A stretch of 64,000 nt of DNA, from sequence record MZ443783.1, one strand, 5' to 3'. The notes below the pieces were generated by a model that did not search any database, was not told where the DNA came from, and worked only from the letters and a program-made list of their open reading frames with translations. How positions within the stretch are numbered: the stretch's first letter is position 1; every line of letters starts with the position of its first letter. A program made the position numbers and the translations under genes. This document shows, in pieces, positions 22,782 to 26,658 of this stretch.

Positions 22782-23204
22782 TTACTGGGACCTCATGGCA
22801 AACGTAACGGATTCTTTCGATTCGAGCTTAGGGCAGCGCCACGTAACGATACACACGTAGGTCTGTTCATATTGCTCGCTCATTGTACACGCTGTTTGCA
22901 CGTTGGTCACATCATTCGTAAGACCATTAGCTGGGTCTTCGAGCGCAAGGCGCATATACGTTGCAATCCAGTCTGCTGTAGTCTGGTCGAAAGGTTCAAA
23001 TAGGTATTGATACACGTCAGCACCAAACGACTCACGCCATTTGCGAGACTTTTTGCGAGTACCAATGACCATTAAAATCTTCTGGACAATGCTGTCCATG
23101 TTCTGCACGTTATCACGCGGTTCAAGTTGAATCCACGCATTGATATCACAATAGACTCGCTCGCTGATAGGAACGTCTATTAGTCTGACTCCGATTCCTG
23201 CCAT
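22782..23204 (-). CDS. Baseplate wedge subunit (gp25-like)
   Basis: SIVQKILMVIGTRK..R.WRESFGADVYQYLFEPFD pattern. Confidence 0.85.
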   Translation of the reverse strand: MAGIGVRLIDVPISERVYCDINAWIQLEPRDNVQNMDSIVQKILMVIGTRKKSRKWRESFGADVYQYLFEPFDQTTADWIATYMRLALEDPANGLTNDVTNVQTACTMSEQYEQTYVCIVTWRCPKLESKESVTFAMRSQ

Positions 23205-23494
23205 TAGCCAAATCTCACGTTAGAGCTACCATTAGAAGCTGTGTCACCACAACTGTTTCCATCACCAGCACGTTGAGCGGGCTTGCCGTTAACACGCACA
23301 CTTGAGCTTGATGTTGCTTTACCAACATGCGGAGGTTTCTTAGGCTTCCAGTGTGGCTTATAGGCGTCACCGCTGCGAACGCTTCCCTTGCCGTTGACAA
23401 GCACATTCGTTGATGCCTGTGCTGGGACGACAGGGAAATAACCGCTGTGACCTGTAGACAGATCTGTGCCAAGTCGAATAGCTTTCTGACCCAT
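23204..23494 (-). CDS. PAAR-repeat spike tip protein (gp5.4-like)
   Basis: AIRLGTDLSTGH...VLVNGKGSVRSGD...VRVNGKPAQRAGD...CG. Confidence 0.9.
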   Translation of the reverse strand: MGQKAIRLGTDLSTGHSGYFPVVPAQASTNVLVNGKGSVRSGDAYKPHWKPKKPPHVGKATSSSSVRVNGKPAQRAGDGNSCGDTASNGSSNVRFG

Positions 23495-23517
23495 GATTAT
23501 TCTCCTCTGTTAGACAC

Positions 23518-23525
23518 AAATTAGC
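23518..23525 (-). promoter_or_regulatory. Putative late promoter motif GCTAATTT
   Basis: 24 nt upstream of the PAAR start, immediately after a terminator. Confidence 0.55.
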
Positions 23526-23539
23526 TTGTTAGGCCGCAG

Positions 23540-23575
23540 AAACAAAAACGGGCAGCCTCATGGCCACCCAGTTTC
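23540..23575 (-). terminator. Intrinsic terminator
   Basis: Minus strand GGGTGGCC-ATGA-GGCTGCCC followed by GTTTTTGTTT. Confidence 0.75.
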
Positions 23576-23821
23576 TGTGCTTGGATTTGTGTCGCTCATT
23601 CCCTCACACCCGAAGCGAGTGCCCGACGGCTTTAGCCGATGAGCCGGAATGAATGTCCGAGAGTGACGATACACCTGGTATCGACAGCATGTGACTCTCG
23701 GGCCATGATAGCAATAGACCAAGCATCGCTATTGCCACCAGCGACACTAAGAACAAAAGCATGTTTCGCTCCTCGTGTCTTACTTTAAATAACTACGTTT
23801 GATCAACTGGTACTTTGTTCT

Positions 23822-23849
23822 GCTCGTCGCCCAACATCACTTGAGTATC
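23822..23849 (+). repeat. 28-bp direct repeat, copy 1 (GCTCGTCGCCCAACATCACTTGAGTATC)
   Basis: Identical to 24211-24238. Confidence 0.95.
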
Positions 23850-24210
23850 AGAACGTTTCTCTGTCTTTACCGCCTACGTTGCGGTTATACCGCGCACGAC
23901 ACTCACATATCAAGGGCACTCGGCGGAAAGGGTAAGTTCCGAATGTCCTAACAACATGAGTGAAGCGAAGGAGGTCCCGTATCGGTGATCTGCAGGGGTT
24001 CACGCACTTTTAACATTCGCTTCTTTGTGCATTAGATCTTTCGTGGACTCGAATGCCCTGCTAATCATTCCACTAAGATATTTCACACCCTATTGTGAAC
24101 GGGTCAAGCTATGGCAGCACGTCAGCACGGCAGGCAGCGGACACACTCCATTAAGCATTGTTAAGGGCAATGCTCAACAGGCTGTGAACAGCTTGGTCGG
24201 AATAGGTTTC

Positions 24211-24238
24211 GCTCGTCGCCCAACATCACTTGAGTATC
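24211..24238 (+). repeat. 28-bp direct repeat, copy 2
   Basis: Identical to 23822-23849. Confidence 0.95.
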
Positions 24239-24825
24239 TCGACCTAAACTTTTACTCTCCACACGACTACAAGGAAGAATCGCGTTTCTGTGACCTGCGG
24301 ATGTTTATCACTCTCAGACTCTTGAGCCACTATCTGGAAGCTAACACGTTGAGTCGTCCGCTGGATGACGTGTTAGCTCTCCTCTCCTCGTCGTGCGAAG
24401 GCCAGAGTGGTAGCTGATGGATTGTCATGAAGGAATCCCTGGGGGTCATCGCTTCCCAATGTACACAGGGTGAAAGCCTATGCACATCAGGCAGCGTCTG
24501 CTGCGGTACTGATGTCCCCTTGAGAGTGGCCATAGCGTTGAGTTTGCGCTTCGCCAGTCTACGTGCCTGGAAGGTATCTGCCGTGCCTATGTCTGCATTC
24601 AGCATGGTTCCTTTGCTGGGCCTTTTGGGCGTCAGCGACAGAGCAGATATTCATCACGTGGGTGCCGGGGTTGTCCTCACGATTACAGAGCGAACTCAAA
24701 CCGGCTGGAGGCCCGTATGCTCAGGAATGCACATACGAGTTTACCAGAAGAACGGCCCCGCTATGGTAGCGTTCTTCCGAGACATACTGATATTACTATC
24801 TGCAATTTTTATTTACAGATTTTTC

Positions 24826-24888
24826 TTAACCTTCGCCCCAACCACAAGAAGCAGGTTTACCGTCACCGTAACCGATTTTAAACAGCAT
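24826..24888 (-). CDS. Putative 20-aa small protein MLFKIGYGDGKPASCGWGEG
   Basis: TAAGGA SD overlapping the upstream stop codon, the same arrangement as at 27712-27724. Confidence 0.45.
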   Translation of the reverse strand: MLFKIGYGDGKPASCGWGEG

Positions 24889-24897
24889 AGTTAGTCC

Positions 24898-26658
24898 TTA
24901 GAACGCTTTACGTTCGATGTTGGAGTAGTACGTGTCATATGGTTCGCTGTACAGCTCTGGGCCGCGCTGCGCACGAATGGTCACGTAACCAGTGTGTCGG
25001 TTGAACGCGATGATTTCGACTGTAGGCTGTTTCGGCTTGATGGTCGAATAAATCGGAGCGTTCATGGTTGGTTCGTCTGTCTGAATCTTATTTACAGATT
25101 GCAGAGCAGCACCAGATAGCGTAGGCAGATTGAATCTGATTTCCGCACGTTTCTGGCCGAACGCAATTTTGATTACACCAGCAGGAAGCTCAACGCCGTT
25201 CTGTTTCAGATACGCGCCGATGCGACGAGCGATACCAGTCAACTGATCGCGTGTGCGAGGGTCGAATGTACCTTCGAAGCTGATTGCTTCTGCGGGCTGG
25301 CGCACGGACAGATGCAGACCTGTGTTGAAATAGCCTTCGGTCAGCAGTCGCAGCACTTCCTTCACGACTTCTTTCGTGTTGGATTTGATGGCAGCGATTT
25401 TGAGTTCAGGCACGTCAACCTTAATCGGGTCACGCAGTTCGGTCTGGTTGTCCATGTAGCCGAGTGATACGTGTTTCGCTTTGGTGTACGTGTGCTGCAA
25501 CACACCAGTAGCGCGAATCAATACAGAGCCAGACTTAGACTGATCGTACAGTTCGTCGCTGGTGGTTGTGCTAAACAGGTAGTAGTCTGTAGGCACTGCC
25601 ATGCGATTAACTGCTTCAACTGCTTTCGTCTGTACTTCTTTTACAGTTTTACCGAAGACAACACGACTACGGTTAGGCTGTGCGGCCGAGACAGGGAAGA
25701 AGGCGCCGTATACAACCTGCACGTTCTTCTGAATAGGCTTGGAAGAGTTTACCTTGATGCCGCCTTGCAACGGAGGTAGCTTCACGCCCACCAGCTTACC
25801 GTTAACGATAGCTTTGTTTGCTACAACAGGCTTTAGGCCAGACAGCAGTTTCTGCAACTCAGCGCCATCAAGAATCTTCTCAAGCGGAACAGCAAGGTTC
25901 TGCGGCAGATAGTGTTTCTTGCGGAACGAGTAGATAACCGTGTCTTTCTTGATCTGCAAAGGCGTAGCCATGTTGCGACCAATCTGACCTACAGGCTGGA
26001 ACGTGTTCTTCTTGTCATCCGCAATGGTGCCGAATGCTTTCGTGAACTCAGACTGTCCGATGATGTTAGCCACACGCTGGTGACCACGAACGATAAACAC
26101 GATCTTCGGTTCGTCTTTCAGGCGCAGTTCGTAACGGTCACGGTTCAGATAAACCATGCTGTACTTATCACCTTTCTCCAGCTCAAGGTCATACTCATCG
26201 TTGGCGTCATCAACCACGACTTTCTTACCTTGATACGTTGCGTACTGACGAGCAGCAGACTCGGAGGCAATCTCCATAGCCTTACCAGTATTCGACAGCG
26301 CAACAGCAAAGTCAGTTACAGCAGGCATCAGGTCAACAGACGATGCAACCGCATAACTGTTACGGCGTTCACCGAGATGCAAATGCACGGCACTTGAAGC
26401 AGACATGAATACAGTGTTACCTGTGTCTTCATGCTTACCTGCAAAGTTCATGCCGCTAATGCGTTCGATGATGTTGGCGCTTAACGCAGGAAACGCGATA
26501 TCGCTACCAGCAGTGAAGTCAAAAATCTCACCGTGACGCCATGCGTATGCCACGTTGTTCGAGCTAAGACCGACAAACGCATCGCCGATCTGCTTAACAG
26601 TCATCGGCATGATACTCAAGTCACGAATGACCGAGTTTTGCTTTTGAATAAGATTCAT
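24898..26658 (-). CDS. Hypothetical protein, candidate internal head protein (586 aa)
   Basis: Long ORF; MSASSA and IASESAA motifs; shares a ~70-aa domain with three other ORFs. Confidence 0.7.
   Translation of the reverse strand: MNLIQKQNSVIRDLSIMPMTVKQIGDAFVGLSSNNVAYAWRHGEIFDFTAGSDIAFPALSANIIERISGMNFAGKHEDTGNTVFMSASSAVHLHLGERRNSYAVASSVDLMPAVTDFAVALSNTGKAMEIASESAARQYATYQGKKVVVDDANDEYDLELEKGDKYSMVYLNRDRYELRLKDEPKIVFIVRGHQRVANIIGQSEFTKAFGTIADDKKNTFQPVGQIGRNMATPLQIKKDTVIYSFRKKHYLPQNLAVPLEKILDGAELQKLLSGLKPVVANKAIVNGKLVGVKLPPLQGGIKVNSSKPIQKNVQVVYGAFFPVSAAQPNRSRVVFGKTVKEVQTKAVEAVNRMAVPTDYYLFSTTTSDELYDQSKSGSVLIRATGVLQHTYTKAKHVSLGYMDNQTELRDPIKVDVPELKIAAIKSNTKEVVKEVLRLLTEGYFNTGLHLSVRQPAEAISFEGTFDPRTRDQLTGIARRIGAYLKQNGVELPAGVIKIAFGQKRAEIRFNLPTLSGAALQSVNKIQTDEPTMNAPIYSTIKPKQPTVEIIAFNRHTGYVTIRAQRGPELYSEPYDTYYSNIERKAF

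Follow-up and report, generated by a model that had tools for sequence, protein, structure and literature searches.

A 1.4-kb gap between protein-coding genes of the Erwinia jumbo phage pEa_SNUABM_28 (Alexandravirus) encodes, on its minus strand, a new family of folded RNA of about 1.0–1.3 kb that is conserved across phage genera. The window that we analyzed, a 64-kb stretch of this genome, is densely packed with minus-strand genes: open reading frames (ORFs) of at least 100 amino acids on that strand cover 94% of it, and the gap is the only break of more than 350 nt in this coverage, in agreement with the preliminary description of this DNA, which had singled it out as the only large gene-free gap amid minus-strand genes. 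Upstream of the gap lies a gene for a 586-amino-acid protein (24898–26658, minus strand) with a KMPT-N domain (Pfam PF20294, E = 1e-19), and downstream lies that for a PAAR spike-tip protein (23204–23494, minus strand; Pfam PF05488, phrog_281), with which the baseplate block opens. The locus had been placed inside the baseplate cluster; more exactly, it forms the upstream edge of this cluster, with the thymidylate kinase gene and others on the opposite side. The label "ORF-less" given to it holds to the extent that there is no long ORF between the PAAR gene and the 586-amino-acid gene; the last 160 nt of the locus contain a conserved small ORF.

The RNA locus occupies the same position in 46 phage records and in the metagenome contigs L047, L058 and L091; synteny is identical in all relatives, and the KMPT-N gene always adjoins the RNA. 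Its carriers, jumbo phages of Erwinia and Dickeya, form a group that spans several phage genera, and the family thus joins the few known giant RNAs of phages. To our knowledge, natural RNAs of such size and structural complexity are very few outside ribosomes and introns. Across relatives, the locus keeps a length of 1267–1357 nt, though nucleotide identity falls to 53–60%. A BLAST search of E. coli genomes and plasmids gave no match to it, and a search for wider homologs with a degenerate DNA pattern returned matches at 15 metagenome and 27 genome loci, of which the covariance model assigned 11 and 26, respectively, to chance. A literature search found no description of this RNA. No Rfam 15 model reached its gathering score in the window or an E value of 0.1 or less in ten relatives, and the models for group II introns (Intron_gpII, group-II-D1D4), GOLLD, ROOL, OLE, HEARO and raiA gave no match in the gap at E ≤ 10; the group II and GOLLD/ROOL models, which had been proposed at the outset as a check, matched neither the gap nor the ten relatives. 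The box C/D sRNA model gave a sub-threshold match at 23817–23874 (15.7 bits, E = 1).

That RNA structure has been selected on the minus strand is, in our judgment, close to certain. The minus-strand consensus fold of the alignment (−600 kcal/mol) comprises 349 pairs, with 93.7% standard pairs, and 154 of the 349 show compensatory changes among homologs, in comparison with 40 and 36 in a coding control of equal length. For the segment 24800–23780, the fold scored −443 versus −252 ± 7.5 under a column-shuffle null (z = −25), with 128 compensatory pairs observed versus 33.7 ± 3.6 in the shuffles. The strand was evident from the alignment, in which the minus-strand structure has 674 G-U cells versus 80 A-C cells and the mirror structure of the plus strand has the inverse. 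Folding energies, which the preliminary description had expected to be better than those of shuffled controls, are indeed better, mainly on the minus strand (z = −2.0 and −4.3 for its two halves; −0.84 and −1.73 for those of the plus strand). An all-against-all covariation search for pseudoknots and long-range pairs recovered, at this sampling depth, local helices only; the two-pair long-range "stacks" that it also produced look like phylogenetic noise.

We rejected a protein-coding explanation of the gap, as stop-free stretches in the six frames are short and unshared among relatives and substitutions fall evenly on the three codon positions (223, 215 and 219), without codon periodicity. Besides the small ORF, no ORF on either strand of the gap is conserved in position; the annotated ORFs at 24330–24605 (minus strand) and 24427–24894 (plus strand) contain no domains and are unconserved. 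With covarying structure over hundreds of nucleotides and no conserved coding capacity, 24800–23780 belongs to the large ornate structured non-coding RNAs, which are a descriptive category and not a homology family, the 3′ 160 nt of the locus being coding. The proposal of a new large phage ncRNA class had been offered as one option, and strong covariation across several genera bears it out, with the amendments that the minus strand encodes the RNA and that a conserved small ORF lies at the RNA's 3′ end.

The 5′ edge of the locus, read along the minus strand, is a 32-nt box (AATCTGTAAATAA...TAGTAATATC; 24789–24820) that is invariant except at two columns in 15 aligned lineages. It probably represents a promoter and/or a 5′ terminal hairpin (24820–24813 with 24805–24798); the promoter role we infer from its position. 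The box occurs once per genome in the 46 records, and elsewhere in the 64-kb window we found two loose matches and, within the upstream gene, a single partial copy. It was accordingly rejected as a general promoter of the phage, as it does not recur as a promoter motif in the window. The box is followed by two variable hairpins, one (24744–24780) whose stem is kept while its sequence differs from clade to clade, and another (24712–24739) in which nine of the ten pairs show compensatory changes and the loop varies in length. Domain A (24514–24713) is built as a multi-helix junction, keeps long unpaired stretches that do not vary, and is conserved more widely than any other part; Salmondvirus JA13 and JA29 have a minimal version of it at the syntenic position (19 bits, E = 2e-4). 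Domains A and G each pass both shuffle and slide controls. In domain A (A2/R1/A4), 46 pairs are 96.2% paired versus 84.4% in shuffles (0/500), and both sides have changed in 25 pairs versus 12.3 in shuffled and 3–9 in slid controls.

Domain B (24447–24512) consists of hairpins with invariant GCUGCCUGAUG and CAUUGGGAAG stretches, and its helix 24500–24477/24469–24447 has compensatory changes in 8 of 21 pairs. Domain C (24303–24420) is a peripheral block of three hairpins (compensatory pairs 9/10, 1/6 and 3/5), and domain D (24196–24300) is a shortened paralog of domain G, as the covariance model of domain G matches the site of domain D in every lineage (26–44 bits). Contig L091 provides a natural deletion variant: its RNA is otherwise complete and lacks the block 24420–24195 (225 nt, domains C and D). 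Domain E (24108–24192) has three hairpins, with compensatory changes in 8 of 13 pairs of the helix 24180–24168/24160–24148 and a mostly invariant helix 24147–24137/24126–24116, and domain F (23994–24090) has a closing helix and two inner hairpins (2/5, 7/10 and 1/6). Domain G (23812–23995) is a covarying three-way junction with an invariant, unpaired CCUCCUU at 23968–23974, a stretch complementary to the AGGAG-type ribosome-binding sites (RBSs) of the same locus. Its 45 pairs (A6/R2/A7) are 97.0% paired versus 79.0% in shuffles (0/500), with changes on both sides in 34 pairs versus 18.5 in shuffled and 5–14 in slid controls. A 33-nt direct repeat has one copy in domain D (24206–24238) and one in domain G (23817–23849). 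We considered it as a CRISPR-like element or as the template/variable pair of a diversity-generating system and rejected both readings, since the repeat has only two copies, each of them lies within covarying hairpins of RNA domains that are paralogs of one another, and a reverse transcriptase is absent.

An AU-rich linker (23780–23811) of low column identity and variable length, the least conserved part of the locus, joins the large RNA to the module of the small ORF. This ORF (23604–23762, minus strand) encodes 52 amino acids, of which residues 1–20 are hydrophobic (mean Kyte-Doolittle value 2.5). It is open in all 17 full-length lineages (47–53 amino acids), has homologs of 53 and 64 amino acids in Yoloswag and SNUABM_5, and has undergone only indels that are multiples of 3; its pN/pS of 0.65 in the N-terminal part and 0.90 in the C-terminal part indicates weak selection at the protein level. 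Its RBS lies in a hairpin (23743–23779) that pairs AGGAG (23769–23773) with codons 3–7 and leaves the AUG in the loop. The 13 pairs of this hairpin are mostly invariant, with one covarying, and its GACAC/GUGUC pairing is kept in 14–15 of 15 lineages. Further covarying hairpins extend over the 3′ half of the ORF (23598–23701; compensatory pairs 5/8, 4/6, 3/5, 4/8 and 3/5).

Directly past the stop codon, AGCGACAC (23589–23596) is a candidate alternative partner of GUGUCGCU (23740–23747), the 5-bp core being paired in 15 of 15 lineages. It had been described earlier as a plain stem, GTGTCGCT/AGCGACAC. The invariant core of that stem stands, and its clearest compensatory change is in S3, the one lineage as aligned; S34 also fits once a gap in the alignment is moved over by one column. 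The stem competes with the pairing in the RBS hairpin, and both of these pairings of GUGUCGCU consist mostly of invariant bases. The locus ends in an intrinsic terminator (23537–23577), detected by a terminator scan, in which a GC-rich hairpin (23570–23549) and a U-run are flanked by a complementary A-tract; it has 9 + 7 pairs, its changes preserve pairing, and it is kept in all lineages and in Salmondvirus. A nearly invariant spacer (23495–23536) with the RBS of the PAAR gene follows.

We propose a reading of this architecture to whose whole statement, action in trans included, we assign a probability of about 0.55. Transcription would start at or just past the box at 24820–24789 and would yield a transcript of about 1.27 kb that ends at the intrinsic terminator at 23577–23537. 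Its first part of about 1,000 nt (24800–23780) would form about 40 helices in domains A–G, the paralogous domains D and G both ending in the same conserved hairpin module; the variable AU-rich linker would then lead to the 52-codon ORF for a peptide with a hydrophobic N-terminus, whose RBS would be kept in the local hairpin. The 1-kb part would be a folded RNA in its own right, serving as a scaffold, a component of a ribonucleoprotein (RNP) or a self-assembling particle, and would work in the manner of GOLLD and ROOL, or of OLE RNA with its membrane protein, rather than as an intron or merely as a leader. The small peptide would be co-expressed and may partner the RNA. The strand, the structure, its conservation, the modular build and the ORF are shown by the analysis, whereas we infer independence from the adjacent genes and any activity of the RNA; we identified no partner, catalytic motif or multimerization signal.

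GOLLD and ROOL occur in phage and prophage genomes, GOLLD RNAs are in many cases longer than 800 nt, and each of the two assembles into RNA-only cages (PMC12286853). The new RNA resembles them in being phage-borne, in its length of at least several hundred nucleotides, in its covarying multi-domain structure, in the lack of a known protein-coding role and in combining a conserved core with a variable periphery. It differs from them in that it is unmatched by the Rfam models in sequence or structure, is longer (about 1.0 kb of RNA in a 1.27-kb transcript), does not lie beside tRNA genes (the 64-kb window has none) and carries a small ORF. Those two RNAs also come from Lactobacillales, rumen or marine sources, in contrast to the Enterobacterales jumbo phages considered here. 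OLE, a large ornate RNA with a kink-turn protein-binding site (PMC12286853), offers a second comparison, as its locus also encodes an RNA-binding membrane protein, OapA, and here a gene for a small hydrophobic peptide follows the RNA; the repeated hairpin module with its sub-threshold box C/D sRNA match is a further likeness. Homology is absent, however, for both the RNA and the protein, OLE is bacterial (extremophilic Firmicutes) whereas the new RNA is viral, and the 52-amino-acid peptide has a single hydrophobic segment. An OLE-like binding of the peptide to the RNA would be pure conjecture. A more specific version of our reading is speculative, and we hold it rather unlikely as it stands: these RNAs might form a hitherto undescribed ornate class restricted to one lineage of Enterobacterales jumbo phages, each a self-assembling particle or a membrane-tethered RNP with the 52-amino-acid peptide, possibly helping to assemble the baseplate or tail of the virion or to take over host translation by way of the exposed, invariant CCUCCUU.

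The main rival is a giant cis-acting leader or attenuator, in which the 1-kb structure would serve the small ORF, the PAAR-baseplate operon or both as a 5′ untranslated region. We consider this possible, at odds well short of even. Alternative pairings would, with the same modest likelihood, set both the access to the RBS of the small ORF and the passage through the terminator into the baseplate genes, and translation of the small ORF may serve as a leader-peptide-like sensor. The arrangement in Alexandravirus, with RNA, ORF and terminator contiguous and 45 nt before the baseplate operon, fits a cis-regulatory leader equally well; contiguity extends to Y3 and the S7 group, and no promoter is recognizable in the 45 nt between the terminator and the PAAR start. 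The RBS is sequestered by a conserved hairpin, and GUGUCGCU can pair upstream (GACAC) or downstream (AGCGACAC), both options being kept in 14–15 of 15 lineages and showing some compensatory change. At the protein level, the ORF evolves almost neutrally in its C-terminal half, with length and frame kept, as expected of a leader ORF.

Against a leader, about 40 conserved helices and 1 kb far exceed the needs of any known one, known aptamers have no Rfam match in the gap or in ten relatives, and the linker between RNA and ORF is the least conserved part. Residues 1–20 remain hydrophobic across six genera, with many synonymous changes, which suggests that the peptide itself matters. The distant genera also speak against it: in Yoloswag, SNUABM_5 and JA13/JA29, protein genes separate the box-proximal non-coding part from the small-ORF module, and in Yoloswag the box also occurs a second time between the two, 52 nt ahead of the small ORF. 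Both Yoloswag and SNUABM_5 have a related box that sits after a hairpin and T-run that trail the upstream gene. Homology of the 5′ kilobase in these two phages consists of short islands only, and their gaps, at 40% pairwise identity, are too diverged for a comparison of structure.

A less probable rival, and one we doubt, is that the locus yields a long, highly structured mRNA for a small membrane peptide with a toxic or lysis-related role, following the logic of a type I toxin or of holin timing; that the structure would block translation of the peptide until processing or refolding is to be doubted equally. In the hok system, an ORF of about 50 codons encodes a small hydrophobic peptide and has a masked RBS, and the 5′ region of the ORF folds back on the 3′ end. 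The locus indeed has an ORF of about 50 codons with a hydrophobic N-terminus, a masked RBS and a possible fold-back between the 5′ part of the ORF and the sequence past its stop codon. However, the peptide matches no family in Pfam (Hok/Gef included, E ≤ 10) or PHROG, and the only antisense promoter-like site found (plus strand, 23681–23709) is unconserved in relatives. The G-U/A-C asymmetry reveals selection on the minus strand only, with no signal of plus-strand structure. The upstream RNA is several times the size of hok mRNA, and this rival leaves its 1 kb of conserved domains unexplained, also where the ORF has a box of its own.

The large non-coding stretch with repeats and the dyad symmetry of the invariant box could suggest an element acting as DNA (a replication origin, packaging site or recombination site) or decayed genes; this is very improbable, since the pairing-preserving compensatory changes and the G-U versus A-C asymmetry between strands demonstrate selection on RNA, not on duplex DNA or a pseudogene, and the gap has no anomaly of base composition or skew.

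Domain V of group II introns, their most conserved part, is a short hairpin that bears a 2-nt bulge and the catalytic triad. The preliminary description had seen a resemblance to it at 24710–24741 on the plus strand and had proposed that a group II-type ribozyme, degenerate or domesticated, lies there. This reading is hardly tenable: its likeness to such introns amounts to size range and multi-domain appearance, no group II or other Rfam model matches on either strand of the gap or in ten relatives, the minus strand is the one that encodes the RNA, and the supposed domain V is the second variable hairpin (24712–24739) read on the wrong strand, a covarying element that differs in sequence in nearly every lineage, the kind of element least conserved here. 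The earlier remark that no reverse transcriptase or maturase ORF is present was correct, as no ORF of the gap has a Pfam domain. Nothing is interrupted at the locus, since the genes on its two sides are complete: the 586-amino-acid gene, whose stop codon precedes it, is colinear with its homologs over residues 1–586, and the PAAR gene is likewise intact. The distant genera have other genes in between.

With about 1 kb of structure, the family is larger than GOLLD. It offers unusually clean covariation, a domain duplication, the natural deletion variant and a candidate partner peptide, and its presence in cultured phages of a laboratory-tractable host makes expression and structure directly measurable. 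The annotation of about 46 genome records is also corrected, in which the region is blank or filled with spurious ORFs and, in most, the conserved small ORF is absent.

The strings quoted in the preliminary description all occur in the DNA where it had placed them, and the stems built from them fared unevenly. The GAAA tetraloop (24468–24479) had been read on the strand opposite to the RNA. The stem GAAGCGAA/TTCGCTTC is incompatible with another helix on the same bases that covaries strongly, and GGTCAAGCT/AGCTTGGTC retains just a 5-bp core in most relatives. In the ACATCAG-GCAGC hairpin, the outer ACATCAG/CTGATGT arms are perfect in the window only; the inner GCAGC/GCTGC pairing is kept and co-varies in S34 and Y3. 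The stem AGCTAACAC/GTGTTAGCT is a real helix, with compensatory change in nine of its ten pairs.

In sequence, the window matches the 267-kb Alexandravirus genome of Erwinia jumbo phage pEa_SNUABM_28 (MZ443783.1) at 100% identity; its position 23495 corresponds to position 85495 of the record. The intergenic gap at 23495-24897 is bounded on both sides by minus-strand genes. On one side is a 586-aa gene (24898-26658), beyond which are a thymidylate kinase gene and others; on the other is the gene for the PAAR spike-tip protein (23204-23494), and after it come gp25-like and wedge genes. The sole recognised domain of the 586-aa protein is KMPT-N (PF20294), and its gene always precedes the RNA described here. 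As the preliminary description had noted, no other large gene-free gap exists: throughout the window, minus-strand ORFs leave no other break of >350 nt. Judging by the domains of the neighbouring genes, however, the gap borders the baseplate block on its upstream side and does not lie inside the baseplate cluster as had been proposed. The window contains no tRNA genes and no base-composition anomaly.

Conservation of the gap and of its position extends to 46 phage records, none of which annotates an RNA. Alexandravirus gaps share 72-100% identity over 95% of the gap; in Sasquatchvirus Y3 and the unclassified pEa_SNUABM_7/13/34 group BLAST aligns islands only, and the length is held at 1267-1357 nt. 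Database scans with degenerate patterns taken from the alignment added three metagenome lineages (L047, L058 and the phB78-like L057/L062). A 34.7-kb contig binned as a Raoultibacter sp. MAG (L091; JAVWLC010000001.1) carries thymidylate kinase, a 585-aa gene, the RNA (GC 0.49 at the match) and PAAR in that order; since this is the same jumbo-phage gene order, the contig is most likely mis-binned phage DNA. No similar sequence was found in E. coli genomes or plasmids.

We derived a consensus fold from 15 lineages on each strand in turn. The minus strand gave -600 kcal/mol and 349 pairs, of which 154 had compensatory changes and 93.7% were standard, compared with -497 kcal/mol, 332 pairs, 130 and 90.5% for the plus strand. 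When minus-strand helices are read on the plus strand, G-U pairs become A-C mismatches, and this asymmetry (674 G-U and 80 A-C cells on the minus strand, 346 and 225 on the plus) assigns the RNA to the minus strand. Single-sequence folding z was -2.0 and -4.3 on the minus strand, and -0.84 and -1.73 on the plus. The non-ORF part (24800-23780) folded at -443 versus -252 +/- 7.5 after column shuffling (z = -25), with 128 compensatory pairs versus 33.7 +/- 3.6, figures that reflect about 10 independent lineages and are inflated by kinship, which is answered in part by slid and coding controls. In domain A (24713-24514), the paired fraction was 96.2% versus 84.4% in shuffles, and 25 pairs had changed on both sides versus 12.3 (0/500 shuffles) and 3-9 in slid controls; for domain G and its paralogue D the values were 97.0% versus 79.0%, and 34 versus 18.5 (0/500) and 5-14. 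As a control, 1350 nt of adjacent coding sequence went through the same procedure and yielded 40 compensatory pairs in sense and 36 in antisense orientation. The minus-strand RNA structure is under strong selection. The large structured RNA first proposed thus stands, with covariation in relatives and folding better than shuffles, but on the opposite strand and with a small ORF at its 3' end.

The assignment to group II introns was rejected. Every string quoted in the preliminary description occurs at its stated coordinates, and its significance turns on the strand and on the relatives. No Rfam family matched the window at the gathering threshold, either strand of the gap at E<=10, or ten relatives at E<=0.1. 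The supposed domain V lies on the wrong strand, its minus-strand counterpart (24739-24712) being among the least conserved elements, and the supposed GAAA loop reads UUUC in the RNA. No gene is interrupted at the locus, and the gap encodes no reverse transcriptase, as had been recognised.

At the 5' edge of the RNA locus is an invariant 32-nt box (24820-24789, minus), present once per genome, which was not borne out as a general promoter motif of the window. In the distant phages Yoloswag and SNUABM_5 a related box directly follows the hairpin and T-run ending the upstream gene. A second copy is found in Yoloswag, 52 nt 5' of the small ORF, and several are found in JA13. By position alone, the box is a putative promoter. 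Its arms can form an 8-bp hairpin, in which the single change of the S34 group is tolerated as a G-U pair. Towards its 3' end, ~190 nt ahead of the stop codon, the 586-aa gene contains a second, partial copy of the box (25088-25099, minus).

Two variable covarying hairpins, the second being 24739-24712, precede domains A to G (24713-23812, minus), whose ~40 helices, mostly with compensatory changes, are connected by extended unpaired segments of invariant sequence. Domain D, too, is matched by the covariance model of domain G in every lineage (26-44 bits), so a 33-nt direct repeat represents the common terminal hairpin of two paralogous domains. In L091 the RNA is complete except for domains C and D (24420-24195), a block that is therefore peripheral. 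The build is modular: one domain is duplicated and one block is dispensable. At 23968-23974 lies CCUCCUU, invariant, unpaired and complementary to the locus's AGGAG sites, and a sub-threshold hit for an archaeal box C/D sRNA model (23817-23874, minus; 15.7 bits, E=1), overlapping the second repeat copy, may mark a kink-turn-like protein-binding module occurring twice; we treat both as leads, not findings. A poorly conserved AU-rich linker (23811-23780, minus) separates domain G from the small ORF, beyond which come an intrinsic terminator (23577-23537, minus) and a 42-nt spacer with the PAAR ribosome-binding site (23495-23536, minus), nearly invariant in all lineages. This near-invariance holds even where a different small ORF follows and exceeds the needs of a ribosome-binding site.

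Stop-free stretches in the gap are short and differ among relatives, substitutions lack three-base periodicity (223/215/219), relatives do not share the small ORFs that appear in the annotation of various records, and the larger gap ORFs contain no Pfam domain. Two overlapping hypothetical proteins annotated in MZ443783, pEaSNUABM28_00120 and _00121 (24330-24605, minus; 24427-24894, plus), show neither conservation among relatives nor a domain and are probably spurious. When we tested which ORFs share start and stop columns over the whole alignment, a single one emerged, of 52 codons (23762-23604, minus), contrary to the earlier claim that the gap is ORF-less; this ORF is annotated in S35, S2 and S17 but not in MZ443783. 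It has AGGAG at the usual distance, is open in 17 of 17 full-length lineages (47-53 aa), accepts indels only in multiples of three (3, 9 and 15 nt) and shows many synonymous third-position changes in its first 20 codons. The N-terminal 20 residues of the peptide are strongly hydrophobic. Selection at the protein level is nonetheless weak (pN/pS 0.65 for the N-terminal and 0.90 for the C-terminal part), and covarying RNA hairpins overlap the C-terminal half. It matched no Pfam or PHROG family, and a big protein database returned only itself and one relative.

The ribosome-binding site of this ORF is masked in a hairpin with codons 3-7. The same codons, GUGUCGCU (23747-23740), could alternatively pair with AGCGACAC (23596-23589) just past the stop, a stem that had already been pointed out. 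Both options are retained in nearly all lineages with some compensatory change, and the arrangement is suggestive of a possible switch.

Homologues of the 586-aa protein (42-50% identity) occur in Yoloswagvirus, Rivsvirus (SNUABM_5), Salmondvirus (JA11/13/29/33) and one Yersinia phage. In the four distant loci examined, 1.7-2.4 kb with extra small genes extend up to the PAAR gene. JA13 and JA29 have a minimal domain A in syntenic position (19 bits, E 2e-4), the module of terminator and spacer recurs in Salmondvirus (nhmmer E 3e-10 and 9e-10), the small ORF recurs in Yoloswag and SNUABM_5 (53 and 64 aa), and short islands of the central RNA recur. In those genera, large RNA and small ORF thus behave as separable units.

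This separability is our main reason for preferring a stand-alone RNA over a pure leader. We favour, with a probability of about 0.55, a trans-acting RNA of the ornate type exemplified by GOLLD, ROOL and OLE: a dedicated promoter would drive it, and it would accumulate as a discrete species and function as folded RNA or RNP. The layout, in which a membrane-peptide gene comes after a large RNA, is reminiscent of OLE and its membrane protein OapA (PMC12286853). An unlikely but serious competitor is that the RNA serves as a giant leader or attenuator acting in cis on the small ORF, with its masked ribosome-binding site, and on the baseplate operon beyond the terminator. Distinctly less probable is a structured mRNA timing a toxic or lysis-related peptide. 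All remaining alternatives together are very improbable. In the searchable literature no account of this RNA came up; it constitutes a new family among the loosely defined giant ornate phage RNAs.

A 75-nt insert between the 586-aa gene stop and the 5' box, confined to the S28/S16/S18/S22 clade, contains a 20-codon mini-ORF, MLFKIGYGDGKPASCGWGEG (24826-24888, minus); an 8-codon ORF, MYIGYGEG, occupies the equivalent place in a distant metagenome relative (L047:5281-5307). An extra ORF of ~42 aa, which the window lacks, lies between terminator and PAAR gene in 2910A, S33, S3, AD1, Yoloswag and SNUABM_5 (L007:1369-1497, L013:1375-1497, L092:6786-6914, L093:7089-7214), with a Lys/Pro-rich C-terminal end common to its carriers.
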